Source: Macrostomum hystrix
Lineage: Eukaryota > Animalia > Platyhelminthes
Length of the DNA stretch: 64,000 nucleotides
Assembly: GCA_950097015.1 (NCBI GenBank)
Contig: CATNEN010000039.1
Coordinates: 8,370,001-8,434,000 of the forward strand
Direction of reading: 5' to 3'
In this document: positions 2,008 to 14,740 of the stretch, piece by piece
How positions within the stretch are numbered: the first letter of the stretch is position 1
Layout of the letters: each line of letters starts with the position of its first letter
The notes under the pieces: model-generated
The model's input: only the letters and a program-made list of their open reading frames with translations
Database searches by the model: none
What the model was told of the DNA's origin: nothing
Translations under genes and position numbers: made by a program

Positions 2008-3306
2008 ATGGCCCAAAAACAGTGGTTCTGTTGGATTCTAGTCATGCTAGTCTGGCATTTTGGCCCAGTCACTAGCCAGGTGGACCACCTGTCAAACCTG
2101 ATCAAGTATCTAAAGAACACCACAGGCAATTTTCACGCGTTGATCACGCCAAAACTGAACCCGGTGGACAAAATCACCGTCAGGATGGACGCCGTGCTGA
2201 GCCAGATAGCCGCTGTTAACACGGTCAAGCAGACGATCCGAATCTCGGCCCTGCTTCAGGCACAGTGGGATGAGGAACGCCTGGTGTGGGATGAGAAAGC
2301 CTTCGGTAATGTCTCAGTTGTCAAATGGGAGGCTTCGCAGATTTGGATCCCAACAATAATGATCTACAATGGTATGGGAGACAACCAAGTTCTAACCCAG
2401 CAGGATCCAGTGAGTTTGAGGTCTTCAACACCCAACACGACGGTTGTGACAGCTCTCTGGCGCAGGGAGTTTGAGTTCTCCTGCAACTTTCCAGCCACCC
2501 ACTTTCCCATTGACGCGCACACATGCGAAATTTCTTTCTACTTCATAGACCCGGATCGCGGAAACGAGAAGATGCACCCCGAACTGAACTTGGTTAATCC
2601 TTACTACTCTCTGGCGGTCTATCAGAACAACAGCGAATGGAAGCTGGTCAATTTTTCCAAGTTCGCAGAGTATCGGTATTATCCAATGATTGAAGGCCTA
2701 GCACCCATCCGTATTCCGACTTTCGGACTGAAGCTGACCATCTGTCGACTGTCAAACTACTACTTCGCCAACATTATCGCGCCCCTGATTCTACTGACTA
2801 TACTGCAGGTGCTTGTGTACTTCGTACCGGTTGAGTCTGGGGAGAAGCTGGGCTTCGGCGTCACCATCATGCTCAGCTACATTGTGTTTCTGCTGTTGCT
2901 GGACGGAATTTTGCCAAAGTCGCAAGCACAGCCAGCCGTGGCGCTTTTCATCACATCGGTCATGATTATGTCGACGGTGTCGCTGCTTCTGACATCGCTG
3001 GTCATGCGCTTTCACTACACACCGCAGGACACTCCAATGCCAGCCTGGATCCAACTGGTTCTCGTTCGCTGCCTTGGTCGAATGCTCTGTGTGAGTGGCG
3101 CCGATGTACAGACTGCTCAAACATGTCCCGAGACCAGCCACTCCTGTGTCAGGAAGTCAGATGGGACAGCCCCGATCAGGTCTGACTGGATGGTGGCAGC
3201 CAAAGTCATCGAGAGACTCTTGGTAACAATAGGGGTGGCGGCCACTGCTGCAATCCTTGTGGCGTTCATTATTGTGCCCTACTGGCATTCTAATCGGCAC
3301 TGTTGA
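2008..3306 (+). CDS. Intronless Cys-loop ligand-gated ion channel subunit, divergent nAChR/5-HT3-like (copy 1)
   Basis: ATG 2008 gives signal peptide MAQKQWFCWILVMLVWHF. Shows W..ERL.W, WIPTIMIYN, Cys-loop CNFPATHFPIDAHTC and M1-M4 with M2 GEKLGFGVTIMLSYIVFLLLLDGILP. Confidence 0.93.
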   Translation: MAQKQWFCWILVMLVWHFGPVTSQVDHLSNLIKYLKNTTGNFHALITPKLNPVDKITVRMDAVLSQIAAVNTVKQTIRISALLQAQWDEERLVWDEKAFGNVSVVKWEASQIWIPTIMIYNGMGDNQVLTQQDPVSLRSSTPNTTVVTALWRREFEFSCNFPATHFPIDAHTCEISFYFIDPDRGNEKMHPELNLVNPYYSLAVYQNNSEWKLVNFSKFAEYRYYPMIEGLAPIRIPTFGLKLTICRLSNYYFANIIAPLILLTILQVLVYFVPVESGEKLGFGVTIMLSYIVFLLLLDGILPKSQAQPAVALFITSVMIMSTVSLLLTSLVMRFHYTPQDTPMPAWIQLVLVRCLGRMLCVSGADVQTAQTCPETSHSCVRKSDGTAPIRSDWMVAAKVIERLLVTIGVAATAAILVAFIIVPYWHSNRHC

Positions 3307-4249
3307 CCTAGCGAAAATCTAAATATTGGAATATTGGAACGTCTCTCGAAGCTGCTTGTCAATGATCATTGATGCAAATGATTTTGGAACTGACAATTCA
3401 CATTTGGAGAAAATGCTCGAAATTATCTACGAGTAGTAATCTCTTTAAAAAGAAAGTAGAAATGTAAAATAAACATACGAGCATATATAATACAGAAAAT
3501 AAAAGCCATTAAAATTCAAAAAAATTTTCTGAAGGATAATTAAGAAAGGCTAAATGACAACTTTATAGCCCCGATCGCTATTCCATTCCCACTGAAAGAC
3601 CCCCGCTGGCTGCAGAGCGGCCATAGACAATGTCGAACCCAGTTAGACTATTTTTTTACTCGTATGCACCCCGATTCGTATAAGATGTCTATGGCTCATG
3701 GTAGAGAGTGGCAAACGATTTGTACAGAGAGAGTGACACAGAGCATACAGGCCAAGTCAATAGTCTATTGCCACTCGCCGTGTCTTATTTTGTTTTACTC
3801 TTTTAATGGATACCTGAGGCAAGCAAAACCCAGACCAGAGAAAAAGAGCTGCTGTCGAAGCAACGTCAGCGTCTTGGACTGGAAAGCGAATCTGATTTCA
3901 GCTTATCTTTGCTAGCTTAGCATAGAGGAGTCAGGATGATTGGGAGGAAACCCAGTCCCCAGCAAGACGTCCGTCCAGAGCCCACACCATTCCAAACTCT
4001 TGGCTTGAGGTTCCTGACCCAGTTGGTTACGAATCGCATAGGATTGTGCAAATGAATGAATGCTGAAGCTATATATACTCGTAGAAGTCCACGCTCTGCC
4101 GGCATCGAGTATTCTCAGAGTGATTTGAAATCCGGCCATAGACGACAGAGTGCGAAAATCCGGGGTGCGGTTGAGTAGACCAGTAAAATAGTCAGCTAGA
4201 GGTTCAAATGTTGCGTCTCGACAGCAATGGGGCCAGGCTTCGAACCGTT

Positions 4250-4621
4250 AATAATAAAAAAATAATAATTGCAGGAGGGCTCCGGGCAATGGCACATCAT
4301 TTAGTGACACTAGACCCGCAGCCAGCGAGGAGGCAATTATTCCCATTTCGCTGACTCCTGAGCACACACGCACACAGATACTGTACGCAGGCATACACTG
4401 ATCACACAGATTTGTACATCTGCCCTAACTTTCTCATCGTCAGGCAGTGCACACTCTCACTGTGCCTTGGAGGTTGGCCCTCAAGGGCGTCAATTGCACG
4501 ACAAGCCCCCAAGCCTTCTCTCCGCGACTGCGCCCCAATAAATGTGGCCTCGCCGTGGAATCGAACTTAGGGACCGTGGTGCGAGAGGCAAACGCGATAA
4601 CCGCTCAGCCACCGACCCCCC
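4250..4621 (-). mobile_element. tRNA-derived SINE family A, full-length copy
   Basis: Minus strand begins GGGGTCGGTGGCTGAGCGG (A box) ... GTTCGATTCC (B box) and ends in an (ATT)n-like tail. About 10 related copies occur in the window. Confidence 0.85.
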
Positions 4622-5927
4622 TGGCGTCGAATCGTTTGCTCCGGTCGGCATATTTCAGAACCTTCCGGGGTCTGCTTGGTCGGCTGCAGAAAAAGCGCAC
4701 AAACTTTGCGCAGGTACGAATGAAGATCGCCTCTGATGAGTGTCTTACATGTAGTACTGCAACAATTGACTTCTATACTTCCTGTACCTAAGAATCACTC
4801 AAAACTTCCAGATTCCTCGCAGGTTCCTCCTCTTGGAGACTTCTTGTTCTTCTATTCGTGCTCTATCGACTCACCTCTCTTTGATGCCCTGTGAAGAGTC
4901 GATTTCTCAAAAAGTCTCTTGTATTTATAGTTTTTTGACGGAACCACCTGTCAAGATCCTTTTCTTTGATGAGTCTTGATGAGTCTGACAGGTCTGATAA
5001 GTCCATGATGTCAAGGTTGTCACTTGTACTTAGTGACTCTTTATTCTTGCAAGGGAAGGTGACGGATGATGGACGATTTAACATAATGGATGACATGTCT
5101 ATAATTGTGTCTTGCCACTCTCATTGTCGGCGGGTTCCTTTGATCTATCTTATCATGACTGATTGACAATTGATTAGTTAAATTAAAAATATGATTGACA
5201 ATTGAAGATTGGTTTATACCGTAATCTTTGCTTTATGCGCATGATGTACTACTATATACTCTTAAGAGTAGAATAGTATGGAATTTTGATGCTATTTTAC
5301 GTTACTCTACAGTTCCACAGGCCAACAGCTAGACCTGCTCGAAGGCTGCCGCGATTCAAGTGCTGGGACGAGGAACCGCTGGGTTTGAGCACAGAGTTGC
5401 TTCGCGTCCCACACAAATATTTTCTTCCGAATGGAGCTTATAATCTCGATTGTGCTGTTGTTAGTTGTAAACAATTGGCATGCCTTGGAGATCGTTGATT
5501 TGTGAAAGCAAATCGCATTCACCTGATCTACCACACGTTTTGACCGTCTCCGGATTATTTTTATGGTACTTGAGGTAATAGCTCACAAAGCAAACTTAAT
5601 TTAGGACCTAAACAGTGTTGGTTCCGAATTAGTATTCTAAAAGCACACGGCACTTCCAACAAACTCAATTATCTGCTCTCATAATTCAACTCAATCATAA
5701 TTATTCGCTTAGCTCGGCTGGTTATGACAGTATGACAGAATGACCGGCGATGACAGAAGTGTTTGCACTTCGGGAACTGCTCAGAGTCAGTGAGAGGCTT
5801 TCATCAATCAGAGCCTGTACTCTGTTGGCCAAGCAAACAATCAGGTCCAACATAATGAAGCACAACTCAATCCAATTTGCTGCCTAGAAACCAATCTCGA
5901 CAATAGAGTCTCTAATTAGTTACGGTC

Positions 5928-5962
5928 TATTTAAAGTGCCGCGGATCTTTGCAGAATCACTC
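5928..5962 (+). promoter_or_regulatory. Candidate TATA box and initiator of channel copy 2
   Basis: TATTTAAA at 5928 and TCACTC about 29 bp downstream, ahead of ATG 5989. A similar TATTTAAG lies at ~11510 before copy 4. Confidence 0.45.
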
Positions 5963-5988
5963 ATGCGGGGGCGCAGCAGTGGCTGAAA

Positions 5989-7302
5989 ATGAAGCCCGTT
6001 GTCTTCATAGTTTGCTTTATTTTTCTCTGTGCGACTGTCATTTGCAATTGTCAAGACTATGAAAGTGACTTGAATTTCTACCTGAAGAACAACATTAGTA
6101 ACTTTAGTCCCAATCTGCTGCCGAGGACTAACAAGGACAAGGCAATCTACGTCGACATGGAGGCGATGCTAGGTCAGATTGTGGCAGTGGACACGGCAAA
6201 GCAAAGCGTAAAGATCTCCGCATTCCTTCAAGCCACCTGGGAGGAGGAAAGGCTTGTGTGGGATCCGGCGCGTTTCGGCGGTGTCTTCGTGCTTAACTGG
6301 GACTCGTCGAACATCTGGTTTCCGATAATAATAGTCTACAATGGCGTTGGGGACAGTCAAATTTTGTCATCGCAGCTACCTGTAAATCTGATCTCGCTTT
6401 CGCCAAATAAGACGCTGGTCACAGCAAACTGGCGACGTGAGCTTGAGTTCTCATGCAGTTTCGATATGTCGAGATTTCCCACAGATGAGCACACGTGCGA
6501 GTTGGAGTTTTTCTTCAGTGATCAAGGACGAGGAAACTTCATGGTAATGCCACGAACGAAAGCTAATTTCTCAATGAATGTGACCGCACTTTATAGACAA
6601 AATAGCGAGTGGACATTGCTAAATGTATCCTCTTTTGCGGTGGTGAAAAAATACTACCTCGTGCGAGGAGTGCCAGACCAGCAGTCGTTACCAATGTACA
6701 TCATTCACCTGGAATTTCGGCGACTTTCCAAGTACTATATGCTCAACGTCATCACTCCGCTACTGCTGTTGACCCTCCTGCAAGTGCTCGTGTACTTTGT
6801 GCCCTTGGAGTGCGGCGAGAAGCTGGGATTCGGCATCACCATCATGCTGAGCTACACGGTGTTTCTGCTGCTGCTGGACGGGATATTGCCCAAATCACAA
6901 TCGATGCCTGCGATCGCTTCATTTATCGTGGCGGCAATGATTTTGTCAACAGTGTCGCTGCTTCTGACGTCGCTGATCATGCGCTTCCATTTCGCCCCCG
7001 ATGGGACCCAGATGCCCGACTGCGCGCGCGCCGTCTTCGTGAGATTTCTTGGCCGGCTTTTCTGCGTCAGAGGAGCTGCCGCAGTCCACGTCAACCCGGT
7101 AGAAGCGGACGCCGCGGTGAGCGAAAGGAGCATCAGGAAGCTGGATGATAAGAAAGAGCCGGCTGAGCCTAAGAGATCAGACTGGGTGGTGGCAGCGCAC
7201 GCAGTTGAGAGGCTCATGGTGGCACTGGGTGTTGTCGCCACTGCTGCCATAATCGGGGTGTTTGTATTGAAGCCGATTGCAGAGCAGCCACAAAACTACT
7301 GA
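5989..7302 (+). CDS. Intronless Cys-loop ligand-gated ion channel subunit (copy 2)
   Basis: Signal peptide, Cys-loop CSFDMSRFPTDEHTC, M2 GEKLGFGITIMLSYTVFLLLLDGILP, four TM segments. Confidence 0.95.
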   Translation: MKPVVFIVCFIFLCATVICNCQDYESDLNFYLKNNISNFSPNLLPRTNKDKAIYVDMEAMLGQIVAVDTAKQSVKISAFLQATWEEERLVWDPARFGGVFVLNWDSSNIWFPIIIVYNGVGDSQILSSQLPVNLISLSPNKTLVTANWRRELEFSCSFDMSRFPTDEHTCELEFFFSDQGRGNFMVMPRTKANFSMNVTALYRQNSEWTLLNVSSFAVVKKYYLVRGVPDQQSLPMYIIHLEFRRLSKYYMLNVITPLLLLTLLQVLVYFVPLECGEKLGFGITIMLSYTVFLLLLDGILPKSQSMPAIASFIVAAMILSTVSLLLTSLIMRFHFAPDGTQMPDCARAVFVRFLGRLFCVRGAAAVHVNPVEADAAVSERSIRKLDDKKEPAEPKRSDWVVAAHAVERLMVALGVVATAAIIGVFVLKPIAEQPQNY

Positions 7303-8259
7303 CTGAAATCGCTGATGGCCAACAGTTAAATTTTAGCTTACTGAGCAGTCATATTCCATCGTCTGGCTTTTCATATCCCAGTCGGTATGCAAAAATGCAT
7401 ATATGGTTGGTAGCACTATCAAATCGACCTTGAAAAATCTCTACTTTTAAGGAAGGAATTAAAGGAGTTTATATTTTTCGTCTACCTTAAAAAAAGCACA
7501 ATTTTAAAACCGTAGTTAATGCACAATTTGTTTAAACGCTACTTAAATGCCGCTTGTTCTATTGGTAATATTTAAGAAATGGTTCTGCCGTTCTACAAAG
7601 CTTGCGTTTAAATTTCCGAGATAGGAGCGAGGCAAAACTTTTCCTGCAAAAGCTTTGTAGTACAACCCCTGGATTTTTTCTCTACTGGTTCTAATTAATC
7701 TACATATTGTTCTGCGATATTATAAGACTTATAAAACATTTATAAAAATGCGCTAAATAATTCACTGAATAAAAGAAATTTTTTGCTCGACCGATATTTT
7801 ATATTATCCTGTTTGTGATACTCGGTTGAACACAGAATAAATGAAAGTTATATAAATCATCTCAGATTCAGCAGTTTAGAACTTGTATCCTAACCGCTAA
7901 ATTTACTATTGATGTAGCTATCTATTAAATTTATTGAATAAACAAACTCTGATTCAATTTAATTAGAATGGATTTCTTCCTGAAGCAAAAATCCATTTCC
8001 ACCAAAGGTTTCTCGAATCAATCTTTTTCGATGAGCAAATCGATGAGTTTCTGCCTTGCATGAGAAGGCGACTGTATCCGAACACCGTCCCCTTTATCTT
8101 CTCATTGTTGAGAAGAAGGGCTAACGTCGGCGGGCAAAAGGCACCCCTTGTGCCGTTCTCGAATCAGACTGGATGTTGGCGTTTCGATTTATCGAGAGAT
8201 TTTCTCGCAATCTCTGGTACTGCTGCTGCGTGTTGATTATTGGCGAATTTATTGTGCGG

Positions 8260-8460
8260 AGGGGTTGTAGCCTTGTAGTTAGAGCGTCAGACTCATTACT
8301 TAAAGGTCCGAGGTTCGATTCCCGGACTCCGCTGGAACAATTTGTGTCCTTTAGCAAGACACTGAACTCTGCATTGCTTCAGTTCACCCAGCTGTTTAAA
8401 GAGTACCTGCATTAGCTGGGGTAATTGAGGGTGCGTGGCGTCCCCTCAGTCCATGGACCG
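8260..8460 (+). mobile_element. tRNA-derived SINE family B (CORE-like middle)
   Basis: GGGGTTGTAGCC..AGTTAGAGCG (A box) and GGTTCGATTCCC (B box), then TGTGTCCTTTAGCAAGACACTGAACTC. Homologous copies at ~36.5, 41.7 and 52.5 kb. Confidence 0.8.
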
Positions 8461-9014
8461 GCCATCGATTTCAATCGACGATCGGCATTACATGCGCACT
8501 GTGGAAAAAGACGATCATGCATGTCACAAATGCAATCTACACAGCCCATTTACTGATATAATTTATACTAGCTACCCCATTCCGCAGATTCATTTGCGGA
8601 TTGTCAATAGCAGCGAAACTAAATACTGCACGCTTCGTTGCTGGGCATACATAATTGATTACTGAGCTAACAGAAGCCGGCTCAACATGAGCAGGTGCGC
8701 CAATAGCTTAGAGAGAGCCATTGTGTAATGAGAAAATTTAACGAAAAAGAAGCCAGAGAATCAGCGGAAGCTGTTATCGGAAAAAAATTAGAAAGTTCTC
8801 AGGTTGCTTAGATACTAATATAATCAACTTCGCAAGTGACCCTGAGGGTGACCGGAGAATGCCTTGGATTGGCTGTCGCTTTTTAATTAGTTAGATGAAA
8901 TGAGTGGTGAAGCGGTGCATCCGACCCTTACACTGAGCTCCATGAGTTCGATTACGAGGCGAGACCACATTGATTAGGGACCCAAACGCGCATAGAAGGC
9001 TTTGGGCTCATTGT

Positions 9015-9176
9015 ACAATTGCCTTGGAGGTTGGCCCTCAAGGGCGTAAATTGCACGACAAGCCCCGAGCCTTCTCTCCGCGGCTGCGCCCCAAATGAAT
9101 GCAGCCACATTTTGGAATCGGGCTCAGGGACCTTGTGCGAGAGGCAAACGCGATAGACCGCTCTGCCACTCACCCT
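9015..9176 (-). mobile_element. SINE family A, 5' half
   Basis: Homologous to 4460-4620. Confidence 0.8.
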
Positions 9177-9790
9177 CACCTCAGTGACAATCAGGTCCGA
9201 AGCGATCCGCTGTGACCATTAGTGGCTCGGTATTGGGCAGTGCCTCGCCACCATCTGTACATGGGTCGATGCCATGGTCGATGCCATGACAAAGGCATGG
9301 TTTGATTTGAAATCAAAGGCACTATTTCAAAATAATTTATGCACTGTAATTTTTCACAGCTGCTTTACTATGTCACTTCAATTATGATTTAGATCGCGTT
9401 AACTTCCATTAACTTCCCGTTAACTTTCCAACGAGGGCTGGGAAATTAAAATGGTTTACCCAAAACCAAACAAAAGGCTAGCCGGAATGCAAACAAATTT
9501 GCTCTGCTCAACGGGTCCAGAATTTCTCTGCGATAAGCAGATAAGCAGACTGAGATAAGCAAATGGAAAACCTCACCTGCTCTCAACGAAGTCATCCATT
9601 TCCGTGCTGCTAGAGGTATTTATTTTTTTCACACTAGTGGCTAATGTCATGTCAAACCATGCAGCTATTCAGGGCCTGGTGGATCAATTAACATGGCAAA
9701 TATAGCTAGAAAGAATTAAAATGGGCTGATACAATAAACGCAGTAAAATTAACTCCAAAACTGCGGCCACGAGAAGACACAGAATTGAAA

Positions 9791-11077
9791 ATGTTCGCCT
9801 TTGCACTGCCGTTAACGCTGATTCTGCTGTCTGTTCCGACAAACGCATCGACAGTTGACTTCGATGCCAAACTCCTGCAACACCTGAGAGGCATCGCCGA
9901 GCACAGTCCCCTGCTGCTACCAAAGCTAAACAGGACGGAGACAGTCAACATAACCATGGACGCCTTGGTGAGTCACATAGTCTCAGTTGACACAGCCAAG
10001 CAAAGCTTGAAAATCTCAGCCTACATCGAAGCCAAATGGGAGGAAGAGCGCCTCGTGTGGAGACGAAGCGACTTTGACAACATCACTTCGACTCGGTGGG
10101 AGGCAGCGCAGATTTGGTACCCAATCATTATGGTGTACAATGGAAACGGCGATAACCAGGTCCTAGTGCCGCAATCGCATGTCGTGTTAGCGTCCCAGAA
10201 TGAAAAACTGTCAGTTGTCGTAGCGTTCTGGCGCCGAGAGTTTGAGTTCTTTTGCAATTTTGATATGGCAGATTTTCCTTACGATCGACACTTCTGCGAA
10301 CTCCAATTCTTCTTCTATGATGAGGGCTATGTTACACAATTACAACCTGTGATCAGCGCCAATCACTTCGATTTGCTCGCAGTTTACCAGGCGAGTAACG
10401 AGTGGATCCTTGAAAATGCGAAGCCAGACGTTCTAAGGAAAAATTACACAATTTTTCTTGGCAGCGATACGACGGAAGCTCGGATCTACAGAATTAAGTT
10501 GGAAATCAGGCGGGTCTCAACTTATTATTTAATCAACATTATAATTCCCCTGCTGCTGCTGACTCTGTTGCAACTGCTCATGTATATCGTGCCCCTGGGG
10601 TCTGGAGAGAGACTGGGTTTCGGCATCACAATCATGCTCAGCTACACCGTGTTCCTTCTGCTGCTGGATGGTATCCTGCCAAAGTCGAAAAAATTGCCGG
10701 CCATTGCGCTGTTTATCACTTCGGCTATGATTGTATCAACGGTCTCGCTGTTGTTGACGTCTCTCACAATGCGCTTTCATTACATGCCGGCTGGAGCCCA
10801 AATGCCGGCGTTCGTTAGAGTGGTCATCGTTCGCTTCTTGGGTCGACTGTTTTGTGCCAGCGGAGGCTCATCATTGCGGGTGGGTCGGGCTCCAGATGAC
10901 GGGGTGTTGAAGGTCAGGGAAGCCGGAGCGCCAGAAGCTGAGGGAGAAGTCCTGCGCCCGAATGTCGAGTCAGACTGGATAGTGGCAACCCGCGTCATCG
11001 AGCGTTTTCTGGCCCTGTTTGGAGTTGTCGCTACTGCCACTATAATCGGCGTTTTCTTACTGAAGCCTTACGCCTAA
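9791..11077 (+). CDS. Intronless Cys-loop ligand-gated ion channel subunit (copy 3)
   Basis: ATG 9791 gives signal peptide MFAFALPLTLILLS. Cys-loop CNFDMADFPYDRHFC; M2 GERLGFGITIMLSYTVFLLLLDGILP. Confidence 0.94.
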   Translation: MFAFALPLTLILLSVPTNASTVDFDAKLLQHLRGIAEHSPLLLPKLNRTETVNITMDALVSHIVSVDTAKQSLKISAYIEAKWEEERLVWRRSDFDNITSTRWEAAQIWYPIIMVYNGNGDNQVLVPQSHVVLASQNEKLSVVVAFWRREFEFFCNFDMADFPYDRHFCELQFFFYDEGYVTQLQPVISANHFDLLAVYQASNEWILENAKPDVLRKNYTIFLGSDTTEARIYRIKLEIRRVSTYYLINIIIPLLLLTLLQLLMYIVPLGSGERLGFGITIMLSYTVFLLLLDGILPKSKKLPAIALFITSAMIVSTVSLLLTSLTMRFHYMPAGAQMPAFVRVVIVRFLGRLFCASGGSSLRVGRAPDDGVLKVREAGAPEAEGEVLRPNVESDWIVATRVIERFLALFGVVATATIIGVFLLKPYA

Positions 11078-11604
11078 ATGACGAGATATTTGCCTATTCA
11101 AGTTTCTTAACTATTAACTATTTTGGGGTCCAAAGTCGTACATCACGTCTTATTGGATAACCTTCTTATCTTATACAATCTATACAACAGAATTGAAATA
11201 TGTGAAACACGCAAAGTTATTAAGTGCAAACTACGAGCTAGATCTGATAGCAGCTCGTACGATCTCAATCTTCGAATGTGTTTTAGAATATTCTGAATAT
11301 TTTTCTGACTGTCTGACATTGGAATAAAATACGTTTTTAACCAAATTGTGTGAGTAGCAGTAGCAGTAGCAATGGTACTATTAGTCAAGAAGCTCAAATA
11401 GTTGTCCAACGACTCGCAGGCTTGAACTATTTTGGACTATAACCAACAGAAAACCACTAGACTTGCCATTGGCCCACTGCAGCAAGGATAGCAGAGCAGA
11501 CGGAGAGCTTATTTAAGGGAGAGAACTAAATCTGACGCTGAGCAAAACTGAAAAGTGCCGCAGCTGCAACTTTATTGAATTTGTTCATCGACTCGCTGAA
11601 AACA

Positions 11605-12903
11605 ATGACGTTGCGGGTTTTTCTGGCCTCAATAATCATCATTATCGCCTGCGGCTGCGTCTGTGCACAAAGACGAGATCTGGAATTCGAACTGTTGCAA
11701 TACTTAAAGAACAACATCAGCAACTTTAGTCCGCTGCTGCGACCCTCCCTGGACTTGAATTCGCCAACCTACATATTCATGGACACCGCCATGTCTCAGC
11801 TGGTGTCCGTTGACAGCGCCAAGCAGAGCGTCAAAATTGGCGCCTTCATGCAGGCCAGCTGGACTGAGGAGCGGCTGGTATGGGATCCTGCCAAGTTTGG
11901 AAACCTTTCTGTGATCAACTGGGACACCTCGAACATCTGGTTTCCTGTGATACTCATCTACAATGGCATCGGTGACAATCAGGTACTGAGCCCACAGCTA
12001 CCAGTGTTTCTGGTGTCTTTGAGTCCGAACTTGACCAGAGTAGCGGCTGGATGGCGTCGAGAGTTCGAATTCTCCTGCCGATTCGACATGACGAAATTCC
12101 CAGTGGATAGGCACATATGCGAGCTGGAGTTTTTCTTCAGCGATCAAGGTCGCAACAATAAACTCTTGATTCCCATCCAGAACCCGTTTATGTCCTTTCA
12201 ATTCACGGGCTTGTACCGAGAAAACAGCGAATGGCGTCTGCTCAGCGCCACGACCAAGGCTGAAAGGAAGCCGTACAGGCTCATCCAGGGATTAGATGAC
12301 GTGCTTCTTCCAACTTATGTGATTCGTCTAGAAATTCAGCGCGTTTCGGAGTACTACTTTATGAACATCATAACTCCGCTGCTGCTGCTGACTCTGCTTC
12401 AAGTGCTCGTGTACTTTGTGCCCCTGGAATCCGGAGAGAAGCTGGGCTTCGGCATCACCATCATGCTCAGCTACACCGTGTTTCTGCTCCTACTGGACGG
12501 CATTGTGCCCAAGTCGCAGTCGACGCCAGCCATAGCTTCGTTCATCACCTCGGCTATGATTTTGTCGACCATCTCGCTACTGCTGACATCACTGGTGATG
12601 CGCTTCCACTTCGCTCCGGACGGCACCCACATGCCAGCCTGCATCCGAGCTGTGTTCGTTGGCTTTCTGGGCCGAATGTTCTGCGTCACCGGCGCCTCCA
12701 AGCCCAAGGTGAGCCAGGCTCCGCCGGCTGATGATGTTGTCAGCGAGTTCAGTGCGCAAAAGAGCGCCGAAGTAGGTCCGCCTGTCCGCTCTGATTGGGT
12801 GGTGGCAGCCTATGCGATTGAGAGGCTCATGGTGGCTCTGGGAGTGGCTGCCACAGCTGTCATTATCGGAGTCTTTGTCATCAAGCCGTACGCAGGCTCA
12901 TAG
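11605..12903 (+). CDS. Intronless Cys-loop ligand-gated ion channel subunit (copy 4, closest to copy 2)
   Basis: ATG 11605 gives signal peptide MTLRVFLASIIIIIACGCVCA. Cys-loop CRFDMTKFPVDRHIC; M2 GEKLGFGITIMLSYTVFLLLLDGIVP. Confidence 0.94.
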   Translation: MTLRVFLASIIIIIACGCVCAQRRDLEFELLQYLKNNISNFSPLLRPSLDLNSPTYIFMDTAMSQLVSVDSAKQSVKIGAFMQASWTEERLVWDPAKFGNLSVINWDTSNIWFPVILIYNGIGDNQVLSPQLPVFLVSLSPNLTRVAAGWRREFEFSCRFDMTKFPVDRHICELEFFFSDQGRNNKLLIPIQNPFMSFQFTGLYRENSEWRLLSATTKAERKPYRLIQGLDDVLLPTYVIRLEIQRVSEYYFMNIITPLLLLTLLQVLVYFVPLESGEKLGFGITIMLSYTVFLLLLDGIVPKSQSTPAIASFITSAMILSTISLLLTSLVMRFHFAPDGTHMPACIRAVFVGFLGRMFCVTGASKPKVSQAPPADDVVSEFSAQKSAEVGPPVRSDWVVAAYAIERLMVALGVAATAVIIGVFVIKPYAGS

Positions 12904-14139
12904 CCTGTGAACTCAGAATTTCTACTGGTTTCAAATTTTTGTAGACGAAACTGATTAATGAAGCTAATGACGATTTCCATGAGCTGACGACTGAATATCT
13001 CGAAATCTCAAAAGAGCACTGACACGTTAATTAACCGATGAACCAGCGCTACGCTAAAAGTAAAATAATTCTCTAAAAAATATACCTGCTAGAAAATGTA
13101 GACTCCAAACCAATAATTGATTTGCACTCGGCATTGAAAGTACTCTAACTTTCTGCTGTGAGCCTAAAACAACAAAAGCAGTTTGTTCAAGAATAAATCT
13201 CTTAGGCTAACAAAAAGTTCTGGCTAGGAAAAACATATGTTTTGTGTTTGCTGCGTTTCCATATCAACGATAGGTGCTTCGACCACCGCAATAGCACTGG
13301 TTGCAGACCAAACACAGAAAATTACTGGCTGACACGATCTGCAATGCCACAAACCCTGTAAAAAATTCGGCTGCTTCTTCGGCGGGTTTTTTGTACAAAA
13401 TACGAGTGGAATCTACCGAAATCCCCCCTATCTCGCAAGAGTTAAAGAAACCACCCAGGAAGCAGCCGATGTAACCGTAAATTGTGCGGAAACCGCCGAA
13501 GAATCACCCGAACCAGTGGCCCATGGGACAACCAGAGAATTATTTACGGGCGATTCCTCGGCGGTTTCTGAGCATGGAATCTTCCGAACTGGAGGATTCT
13601 TTGGGTGATTCCATTTCGCCACCAAGAAGCACCGAGAAAACGCCCAGTTGGTTAGATTCTAAGCATGGAATCATCCGATTGGTATGTTTCCAGCGTTCGG
13701 CTGTTTCTTTTTCTGGAAACAGCGCAGATTCCAACTGGAATCACCCAAAGAAACATCCCTATTTTTTAGCGGGAAGTGATTAATAAAAAGCCCGATCTAA
13801 AGTGTCTGACCGTTTCTCTGCAATTCTGCAATAATCCCATTGATTAACCAGTGCTGCTAATGAAATTATAGAAGAACAATCGGGACACACCATTTGAGCA
13901 CACAATTCGGTGTGCTCAAACAATATAACGGAGTAGCGTGGGCTGCATTCAAGTGGACTGTTTGCAGTGAAAACAGTGAGTCCCCAGTTGTATCCACAGT
14001 TGGGGAGAGGCTTTGTATAGCCAACCAAAGGCAAACACTGTGACAGAAACAAGCATGTCCCTGTTTGCAAGCGACATTGCCACGAAAAATCCTTGGATAG
14101 TTGTCGAGATAAATTGATTAATGAAGTATTATAGATAGA

Positions 14140-14455
14140 GCTATGCTTAGCTAGACATCTGCTAGCCAGTGCTAGGCTTAGCTAGACATCTGCTAGCCAG
14201 TGCTAGGCTTAGCTAGACATCTGCTAGCCAGTGCTAGGCTTAGCTAGACATCTGCTAGCCAGTGCTAGGCTTAGCTAGACATCTGCTAGCCAGTGCTATG
14301 CTTAGCTAGACATCTGCTAGCCAGTGCTAGGCTTAGCTAGACATCTGCTAGCCAGTGCTAGGCTTAGCTAGACATCTGCTAGCCAGTGCTAGGCTTAGCT
14401 AGACATCTGCTAGCCAGTGCTATGCTTAGCTAGCCAGTGCTAGGCTTAGCTAGAC
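14140..14455. repeat. 31-bp minisatellite (CTAG-rich)
   Basis: About 9 copies of GCTAGCCAGTGCTAGGCTTAGCTAGACATCT. Confidence 0.95.
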
Positions 14456-14740
14456 TAATGCTATAAAAGAGAAAAAAACCCTTAAATTTCATAACGAGCT
14501 ACAAAATTGCAAGAAGAAATCTGTAAAATTTTCAATAATGCGCAGTTCAGAAACTGAAATCGATCGGTATATTTCAATAGTGATAAATTCGATCAGGTTG
14601 GAATGAAGCGGAATCAATGCAAGCAACGTCCACGATTAATCTTCCATCAGTAATCTTCCAGCACAACAGAAACTAATCTGAAGACAGAAACAATCGATAA
14701 TCGATAAAAATCAATTCTAATTGCCGATAGAATGCGCCAA

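Follow-up and report, generated by a model that had tools for sequence, protein, structure and literature searches.

A tandem array of nicotinic-receptor-like genes in the flatworm Macrostomum hystrix, probably part of a Macrostomum-only subfamily of orphan cation channels

Results

The array and its neighbourhood

We analysed a window of 64,000 nucleotides from the genome of Macrostomum hystrix (contig CATNEN010000039.1, positions 8,370,001 to 8,434,000 of the forward strand), which holds four genes for Cys-loop channel subunits. Coordinates below count from the first letter of the window.

2008..3306, + strand: gene 1, single-ORF Cys-loop subunit of 432 aa with PF02931 and PF02932
5989..7302, + strand: gene 2, single-ORF Cys-loop subunit of 437 aa with PF02931 and PF02932
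9791..11077, + strand: gene 3, single-ORF Cys-loop subunit of 428 aa from the ATG at 9791, with PF02931 and PF02932 and a GER pore entry
11605..12903, + strand: gene 4, single-ORF Cys-loop subunit of 432 aa from the ATG at 11605, with PF02931 and PF02932
2716-3015 (gene 1), 6691-6990, 10481-10780 and 12310-12609, + strand: transmembrane-coding blocks, the best-conserved DNA common to the four genes
12424..12489, + strand: stretch of gene 4 encoding the pore-lining M2 helix, an exact 65-nt run of which is also found in a paralogue (L002) 1.2 Mb away
11564..13132, + strand: apparent unspliced transcript of gene 4, from zero-mismatch contigs colinear with the genome in four runs

The original prediction of four co-oriented, single-exon Cys-loop genes is borne out by the ORFs and by the presence of both channel domains, Neur_chan_LBD and Neur_chan_memb, in all four (Pfam E-values 1e-13 to 1e-27). 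The likely starts of genes 3 and 4 lie slightly inside ORFs that open at upstream TTG codons. Gene 1 shares 47-51% identity with the other array members, and the transmembrane-coding blocks are 71-79% identical to the gene 2 copy. No tRNA genes were found when the spacers between the array genes were searched for them. The neighbouring genes do have introns, as had been claimed: the cullin gene next to the array is broken into at least four ORF pieces, and partial pieces represent the aminotransferase and HPF1 genes. The intronless state is nevertheless not special to the array, given that about 30 Cys-loop genes of this genome, including anion-type genes and genes that keep the binding-site tryptophans, are complete single ORFs.

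Gene 4 appears to give an unspliced transcript. Its contigs start after an AG at 11562-11563 and stop approximately 15-20 nt beyond an AATAAT at 13112-13117; as the records do not give a type for these four runs, their RNA nature, and with it transcription, is read from coverage confined to the gene. The contigs break at the M2 stretch, where a variant contig from a paralogue overlaps. Gene 4 plus at least one paralogue appear to be transcribed. Transcript depth was low in the four runs, and no contigs were found for gene 3, the other gene examined in them.

Extent and placement of the family

A genome-wide count of paralogues, proposed as a check on the original prediction, gave a clade of 11 genes plus a sister pair (L012/L013). 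Eleven intact genes are at least 52% identical to gene 4, with the next matches at 32% or less, and paralogues within the clade share 41-69% identity. In trees rooted on the anion-type genes of the same genome (FastTree on all 125 rows, a mixture model on 47 rows), the clade is supported at 99-100%, or at 100% with L012/L013 included, and both trees place it inside the cation-type nAChR-like radiation. Gene 1 is its earliest-branching member, and three further members form a second array on another contig (C11). Gene 2 pairs with M. lignano P0001 (66% identity) and gene 3 with P0002 (53% identity), a MetaClust protein taken as M. lignano; the only close relatives found are P0001, M. lignano P0015, P0002 and P0025, the last two being unnamed MetaClust entries.

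Outside Macrostomum, the sequence searches returned no relative above approximately 29% identity. A control gene from the same genome (L014) recovered orthologues from flatworms, nemerteans and annelids at 36-47% identity, although its search returned no M. lignano match. The clade groups with short "alpha7-like" proteins of gastropods (Haliotis P0062 and P0137, Patella P0007; SH-aLRT 94), but the branches joined here are long and the grouping may be artefactual. One-to-one orthology to conserved non-alpha subunits is rejected, as searches beyond the genus yielded no orthologue. The trees recover what was originally proposed, an independent expansion of nAChR-derived subunits restricted to one lineage: the group is monophyletic and was found only in Macrostomum. 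A literature search on the clade found no paper.

Fold and pore

Both domains, the C-x13-C loop (seen in all members, as predicted) and four transmembrane helices identify the products as members of the Cys-loop pentameric ligand-gated channel superfamily. The predicted structure of gene 4 (pLDDT 90.4) is nAChR-like, with a beta-sandwich, M1-M3, an MX helix and M4; its closest structures are the alpha7, alpha4beta2 and muscle nAChRs (Z 27-31, TM-score 0.70-0.77), and the best 50 structural matches are all vertebrate nAChR or 5-HT3A. Identity to canonical nAChR subunits is 20-26%. The M3-M4 stretch is short, as had been noted, at approximately 59 residues versus approximately 135 in human alpha7.

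The M1-M2 linker is of the cation type in all 11 genes (GEK or GER, with no PAR at M2), in agreement with the original reading. The M2 helix retains -1' Glu, 6' Thr, 9' Leu and 13' Val, and carries a signature of the clade in 2' Gly and in 19' Asp, which stands in place of 20' Glu; the pore is nearly invariant across the clade. The -1' Glu, the lack of P-A-R and the position on the cationic side of the tree are the marks of the cation-selective nAChR/5-HT3 branch, and the subunits are probably cation-selective.

The ligand-binding site

The losses in the ligand site that had been read from the four array genes extend to the whole clade. The Asp of the loop A WxPD motif is replaced by V, I, L or T in the M. 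hystrix copies, the loop B Trp by S, N, I or Y, and the loop D Trp by F, L, M, H, Y or I; loop C has no vicinal Cys pair in any member, differs between copies and varies more than any other part of the extracellular domain (loop C tip 2.17 bits vs 0.15 bits in M2). Both tryptophans and the second loop C Tyr are absent from all 13 members compared. Outgroups keep each of these residues, as well as the loop A Asp and the CC pair. The losses affect the principal and complementary binding faces alike, and several of the lost polar or aromatic residues have aliphatic replacements. The clade also has a loop C that is four residues longer, a four-residue insertion in loop E bearing a glycosylation sequon, and a Cys-loop that reads FPxDxH.

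The term "acetylcholine-site-less", used in the original prediction, holds for three of the five aromatic-box residues, the loop A Asp and the CC pair, but it is slightly overstated because two box tyrosines survive: the loop A Tyr is kept in 13 of 13 members, and the first loop C position is Y or F in all of them. The full box of ACh-gated receptors (loop A Tyr, loop B Trp, two loop C Tyr, loop D Trp) is thus not present, nor is the loop C Cys pair that defines alpha subunits; the persisting tyrosines may be compatible with weak gating by choline or ACh.

Selection and gene conversion

All 11 ORFs are intact, with dN/dS of 0.16-0.31. Between the extracellular domains (ECDs) of paralogues, dS is saturated and pairwise dN/dS is 0.08-0.16. 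The pore-coding part behaves differently: three paralogues (L005, L006 and L007) have in common an exact run of 283-284 nt within it, and their pairwise dS is 0.01-0.03 in M1-M3 vs 1.3-3.2 in the ECD. Between deep subclades, 63-70% of M2 codons are identical, compared with 36% expected from codon usage. Judged by its sequence, the 65-nt run common to gene 4 and L002 is a short gene-conversion tract. These patterns indicate that the pore-coding part is homogenised by gene conversion while the ECDs diverged, an observation that is new here, although the raised synonymous identity of M2 between distant paralogues could in part reflect constraint at the nucleotide level instead of conversion.

Discussion

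We think it probable that the array is part of a Macrostomum-only subfamily of nAChR-derived orphan cation channels that are opened by something other than ACh and whose pore is homogenised by gene conversion. The binding site has lost residues that make cation-pi contacts with ACh while the pore has stayed nearly invariant, and the members are therefore most likely functional orphan ligand-gated channels; we infer both the non-ACh ligand and the cation selectivity from these residues. The family would probably have originated as an intron-free copy, likely by retroposition, and duplications, some in tandem and others dispersed, would then have multiplied it before the split between the two Macrostomum species compared. 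The ligand-binding domains have since diverged under purifying selection, with gene conversion repeatedly copying the pore module (M1 to the MX helix) among paralogues and so keeping it uniform. Such homogeneity of the pore would suit subunits that assemble together, and heteropentamers, suggested in the original prediction, are plausible; retroposition and co-assembly are likewise inferred.

The array is a new flatworm addition to a known class of orphan nAChR-like expansions. Intronless tandem expansions of nAChR genes, with embryonic, immune and stress expression, are known in molluscs (PMC6896357); the survey of Jiao et al. 2019 (PMC6896357) covered no flatworms and described intronless nAChR genes as confined to molluscs. 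The mollusc and annelid expansions reported there are, like the flatworm clade, lineage-specific, divergent, nAChR-derived, intronless and partly tandem, and many of their members lack ACh-site residues; the features that mark the lophotrochozoan genes (no introns, tandem arrangement, a lineage-specific clade) are all found in the flatworm genes. Those expansions are massive, whereas the flatworm clade is small (11 + 2) and has a signature of its own in the combined loss of the loop B and D Trp and the loop A Asp, the loop E insertion with its sequon, the FPxDxH Cys-loop and the conversion-homogenised pore. The one gastropod neighbour examined, Patella P0007, keeps both Trp residues, unlike the flatworm clade. 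Alpo4 of Alvinella pompejana is likewise a lophotrochozoan orphan that stands apart from characterised nAChRs, with no vicinal Cys pair and no known agonist; it retains the tryptophans of loops B and D as well as the tyrosines of loop C (F103, W159, Y199, Y205 and W65; PMC10338036), and at three of these five positions the flatworm clade has lost the residue. Vertebrate alpha7 and alpha4beta2 have the same fold and the same -1' Glu, 6' Thr, 9' Leu and 13' Val, but differ in possessing the three box residues (of five), the CC pair and the loop A Asp that the clade is missing.

Alternatively, one could envision the array as a flatworm parallel to the chemotactile receptors (CRs) of cephalopods, that is, as environmental chemoreceptors in peripheral sensory cells, in which divergent ligand-binding domains joined to a common, conversion-kept pore module would permit combinatorial assembly for the detection of external compounds. 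Cephalopod CRs are intronless, clustered in tandem and nAChR-derived, and are cation channels that have lost ACh binding (PMC11526382); CRT1 and its relatives resemble the flatworm genes in their derivation, lack of introns, tandem arrangement and cation-type pore, and ACh-site residues are lost here as well. The ligand-site loops are moreover the most variable parts of the ECD, the aliphatic replacements would agree with such a role, and the low transcript depth would fit a rare cell type. We nonetheless regard this reading, including its combinatorial component, as unlikely. The approximately 30 intronless Cys-loop genes of this genome have the same architecture, as do mollusc expansions whose expression is not sensory (PMC6896357), and any set of Cys-loop paralogues will typically combine variable loops C and F with a conserved M2. 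In addition, the clade is small and old, with low dN/dS and saturated dS, and genes 2 and 3 have one M. lignano partner each, which is unlike a chemoreceptor family with fast birth and death; together these observations weaken the chemosensory inference from architecture. In cephalopod CRs, expression has been shown to be sensory, agonists to be hydrophobic and pocket residues to be under positive selection (bioRxiv 10.1101/2025.03.03.641191), whereas the flatworm clade is known from sequence. Common descent of the two expansions is very unlikely, since in a tree built without a CR sequence the closest kin are from Macrostomum and then from gastropods, and neither the best 60 sequence matches nor the best 50 structural matches include a solved cephalopod receptor.

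Another explanation, which we consider improbable, is that the genes encode accessory subunits that bind no ligand themselves and co-assemble with ACh-binding alpha subunits, tuning cholinergic receptors as beta1, alpha5 and beta3 do in vertebrates. The lack of a CC pair is as in non-alpha subunits, the transmembrane core is strongly conserved, and canonical alpha-type subunits with a YPCC motif are encoded in the same genome (e.g., L022). However, an accessory role fits poorly with the loss of residues on both binding faces and with the low identity to canonical subunits, 11 to 13 such subunits would be excessive, and a pore signature of their own, kept uniform by conversion, points to assembly with one another. 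That the genes are decaying, functionless retrocopies is scarcely credible: they are intronless, gene 3 yielded no contigs, and many intron-poor mollusc copies are silent (PMC6896357), but the intact ORFs and low dN/dS on which we reject a pseudogene origin, the nearly invariant pore, the relatives retained in M. lignano and the signs that gene 4 and one or more paralogues are transcribed contradict decay for the family as a whole, although it could apply to single copies.

If the genes are, as we favour, orphan channels opened by a ligand other than ACh, this compact and well-delimited family of 11-13 genes is a practical set in which to find new ligands of the channel class. To our knowledge, molluscs and annelids have many orphan nicotinic-like receptors, yet a job is known only for the cephalopod chemotactile receptors. 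Macrostomum is transparent and amenable to RNAi, and a study of the ligands of this family would test whether the shift from neurotransmitter receptor to chemoreceptor has happened repeatedly; should the chemosensory reading prove true, descendants of nicotinic receptors would have been recruited to chemosensation a second time, independently of the cephalopods. The contrast between a uniform pore module and freely diverging ligand-binding domains offers a clear-cut case of modules evolving separately inside a single gene and bears on subunit compatibility in heteromeric channels.

Results

Organization of the array. The original observation of an array of nAChR-like genes is confirmed. Four ORFs of 430–475 aa occur in the same orientation in the ORF listing, each matching both PF02931 (ligand-binding) and PF02932 (transmembrane):

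2008-3306, + strand: gene 1, single-ORF Cys-loop subunit
5989-7302, + strand: gene 2, single-ORF Cys-loop subunit
9791-11077, + strand: gene 3, single-ORF Cys-loop subunit, probable ATG start at 9791
11605-12903, + strand: gene 4, single-ORF Cys-loop subunit, probable ATG start at 11605

The other array genes are 47–51% identical to gene 1. The ORF listing began genes 3 and 4 at an upstream TTG; in both, a signal-peptide-like stretch follows the ATG. The contrast first drawn between an intronless array and intron-bearing neighbors was borne out: the cullin gene is spread over four or more distinct ORF pieces covering successive parts of the Pfam profile, and the aminotransferase and HPF1 genes are present as partial pieces only, so that all three are split into exons.

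Several repeats accompany these genes. A long microsatellite with an 8/12-nt period (667-1100) lies upstream of gene 1, and a 31-nt minisatellite (14070-14498) adjoins the last aminotransferase exon. Both long array spacers carry a short dispersed repeat (47-nt copies at 4463-4509 and 9020-9066, 98% identical; also 8345-8430), with a contig depth of hundreds to thousands in the four sequencing runs described below. Loose ends at a neighboring repeat near 8325 resemble the 3' part of a tRNA, so that the repeats may be SINE-like; ARAGORN found no tRNA gene in the spacers.

Extent of the family. In a six-frame search of the 220-Mb assembly with gene 4 as query, we found 11 intact copies at least 52% identical to it, gene 4 itself counted. 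The window has four of these and the rest of its contig two; contig C11 carries a cluster of three genes and one further copy, and C37 a single copy. The C11 cluster comprises just three copies within 30 kb. Below these, identity to gene 4 falls sharply, to 30–32% for a tandem pair on C38 (L012/L013; G000:C38:829256-832144) and to 28% or less for all others. Like the clade, this pair has a sequon-bearing insertion in loop E and has lost the loop A Asp as well as both Trp residues; in L012 an N-terminal part is missing from within the ORF, reflecting an intron or a truncation.

The nearest database protein (P0001) is identical to a Macrostomum lignano hypothetical protein and shares 64% identity with gene 4 and 66% with gene 2. 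When 1.8 billion representative proteins were searched with a profile, a second protein, taken to be from M. lignano (P0002), scored 619 bits. Leaving aside two short fragments of clade members (P0015, P0025), single-receptor-unit proteins otherwise scored no higher than about 220 bits. The nearest named proteins are "alpha-10-like", "alpha-7-like" and "beta-3-like" entries from corals, amphioxus, sea star, tubeworm, gastropods, a brachiopod and a nemertean; the protein database searches gave no clade match outside Macrostomum above about 29% identity. These searches can detect flatworm orthologues where they exist, because a control query, an intronless receptor of the same genome that keeps the canonical Trp residues (L014), recovered clear orthologues, 36–47% identical, from parasitic flatworms, nemerteans, annelids and molluscs. 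L014 and the likewise intronless L016 (G000:C39:5224548 and C38:13087722) have an unusual M2, with an AEK entry and a Phe-/Leu-rich lining, and with clear orthologues in those same groups (36–47%) represent a conserved spiralian receptor type. Literature searches found no published description of the clade.

Phylogeny. Two trees were built without cephalopod chemotactile receptor (CR) sequences and rooted with the genome's own anion-type receptors (FastTree, 125 rows; IQ-TREE LG+C20 PMSF, 47 rows). In both, the 11 copies group with the two M. lignano proteins in a single clade (99–100% support), L012/L013 are its sister (100%), and the clade falls within the cation-type nAChR-like radiation, apart from canonical alpha/beta subunits (Xenopus alpha6), the alpha7-like group and 5-HT3A. 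It joins a short gastropod "alpha7-like" family (SH-aLRT 94), an attachment we regard as tentative, both branches being long. That each copy might be a 1:1 orthologue of a conserved non-alpha subunit, which the original prediction itself named as counting against it, does not hold in these trees for any such subunit. The four genes of the window separate deep in the clade as paralogues, gene 1 first; gene 2 groups with P0001, gene 3 with P0002, and gene 4 with the dispersed copies L002 and L004. Given these depths and the pairing of genes 2 and 3 with M. lignano proteins, the array is older than the split of the two Macrostomum species.

Ligand site. We aligned 13 clade sequences with 14 outgroups, using Xenopus alpha6 as ruler.

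Ligand-site residues in the clade and in outgroups. Tyr and Trp rows are counted against the 12 non-Macrostomum outgroups.
Loop A Asp of WxPD: lost in the clade (V/I/L/T in this genome; V and E in the M. lignano pair); kept by all outgroups but one
Loop A Tyr: present in 13/13; Y or F in 11/12 outgroups
Loop B Trp: lost in 13/13 (S/N/I/Y); present in 11/12 outgroups
First loop C Tyr: Y or F in 13/13; Y in 10/12 outgroups
Second loop C Tyr: lost in 13/13 (L/I/M/V/A); aromatic in 12/12 outgroups
Loop D Trp: lost in 13/13 (F/L/M/H/Y/I); present in 11/12 outgroups

The vicinal Cys pair is absent from every clade member in the alignment. Loop C exceeds that of canonical subunits by four residues, the loop E hairpin carries a four-residue insertion with an N-x-S/T sequon in all clade members and in L012/L013, and the Cys-loop reads FPxDxH as against FPFDxQ. 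The original description of the ligand site was right in substance, with the loop B and D Trp, second loop C Tyr, loop A Asp and Cys pair all lost. As two residues of the five-residue aromatic box persist, the site has been remodeled and not abolished.

Pore and fold. M2 is identical in nearly all members (Glu at −1', Thr at 6', Leu at 9', Val at 13'), with Gly at 2' and Asp at 19' replacing Glu at 20'; by the established charge-selectivity determinants of the superfamily, a gated cation channel is predicted. The M3-M4 stretch spans about 59 residues. AlphaFold gave a confident model of gene 4 (pLDDT 90.4), matched best in structure by vertebrate alpha7, alpha4beta2, alpha3beta4 and muscle subunits (TM-score 0.70–0.77, Z 27–31, 20–26% identity), with neither a cephalopod receptor nor Alpo4 among the matches listed.

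Between pairs of the C11 cluster, synonymous divergence is 0.01–0.03 in M1-M3 as against 1.3–3.2 (saturated) in the extracellular ligand-binding domain (ECD). The three cluster genes (L005, L006 and L007; G000:C11:3958111-3966282) have in common an exact run of 283–284 nt that starts at the end of M1 and takes in M2, M3 and the helix that follows it (MX), outside which third codon positions are 30–60% identical; two copies on other contigs (L008, L010) show 80–90% third-position identity over the same pore part. Gene 4 and L002, 1.2 Mb apart, share an exact 65-nt run over M2 (12424-12489 in the window). When only degenerate codons encoding the same residue in both genes were counted, the share of identical codons was 63–70% in M2, even between the deepest subclades, and 41–48% in the ECD, M3 and M4, with 36% expected from codon usage. 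Gene conversion limited to the pore module is the simplest explanation, with entropy as a result at 0.15 bits in M2 versus 2.17 bits at the loop C tip; nucleotide-level constraint on M2 could contribute to the raised codon identity.

Intactness and transcription. ORFs are intact in 11/11 copies, and whole-gene pairwise dN/dS is 0.16–0.31; decay of the genes was set aside. We examined contigs from four runs of one 2020 study over genes 3 and 4; as the kind of run is not on record, we infer transcription. Gene 4 is spanned in all four runs (from 11563-11576 to 13100-13132) with zero mismatches and zero gaps, and gene 3 and the 500-nt spacer have essentially no contigs in these runs. Restriction of the coverage to a single gene is more in keeping with RNA than with genomic DNA. 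The gene 4 contigs start just after an AG at 11562-11563, 41 nt 5' of the ATG, with TATTTAA about 50 nt further upstream, and stop shortly past an AATAAT. In two runs 12355-12488 is also overlapped by a further contig, with six differences relative to gene 4; it was most likely transcribed from a paralogue with the same converted M2 tract, suggesting that a paralogue is also expressed, and this shared tract would account for the breaks in gene 4 contigs at 12453-12459. Directly 3' of gene 4, 13357-13900 has a contig depth of 400–1000 in all four runs versus 6–11 over gene 4, and is either a repeat or a highly expressed element.

Discussion

We consider it likely that these genes form a family of orphan nAChR-like channels restricted to Macrostomum, probably cation-selective and non-cholinergic, whose pores have undergone module-wise concerted evolution. 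Alternatively, one could envision chemosensory channels in sensory cells, as proposed originally by analogy with cephalopod CRs. The structural and evolutionary analogy is a fair one: CRs are nAChR-derived, intronless and tandemly clustered, with diversifying selection in the pocket (PMC11526382, a review), and are reported to be enriched in sensory suckers and to have a hydrophobic pocket (preprint, bioRxiv 10.1101/2025.03.03.641191). Nevertheless, four points keep gene architecture from identifying a sensory role. First, the clade is small and old, with at least two of its lineages kept in M. lignano. Rapid turnover is typical of chemoreceptor families, and the clade differs from them in lacking it. 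Second, intronless Cys-loop genes are common here. Exon-level matches to the ligand-binding domain number at least 156 in the genome, and about 30 Cys-loop genes are complete in a single ORF, including anion-type (PAR) genes (L031, L034, L035, L037 and L040) and cation-type genes keeping both Trp residues; intron loss is therefore widespread in the superfamily in this flatworm. Loci of the wider Cys-loop repertoire include L014-L018, L021, L031 and L034-L040. Third, there are precedents in molluscs, whose intronless, tandemly arrayed, highly divergent nAChR genes Jiao et al. attributed to retroposition and tandem duplication and reported to be expressed in embryos, in a variety of organs and upon immune or stress challenge (PMC6896357). 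Fourth, the annelid Alpo4 is an orphan that is not ACh-gated (PMC10338036), and the flatworm clade would resemble it in both respects. We regard a chemosensory role as unlikely, and accessory subunits, rather than orphan channels in their own right, as less likely still.

The array is a new flatworm case of a known type of nAChR-like expansion. Jiao et al. stated that intronless nAChR genes occur in molluscs only, flatworms being outside their survey (PMC6896357); the array extends that picture beyond molluscs, and would be considerably more significant if sensory expression proved true.
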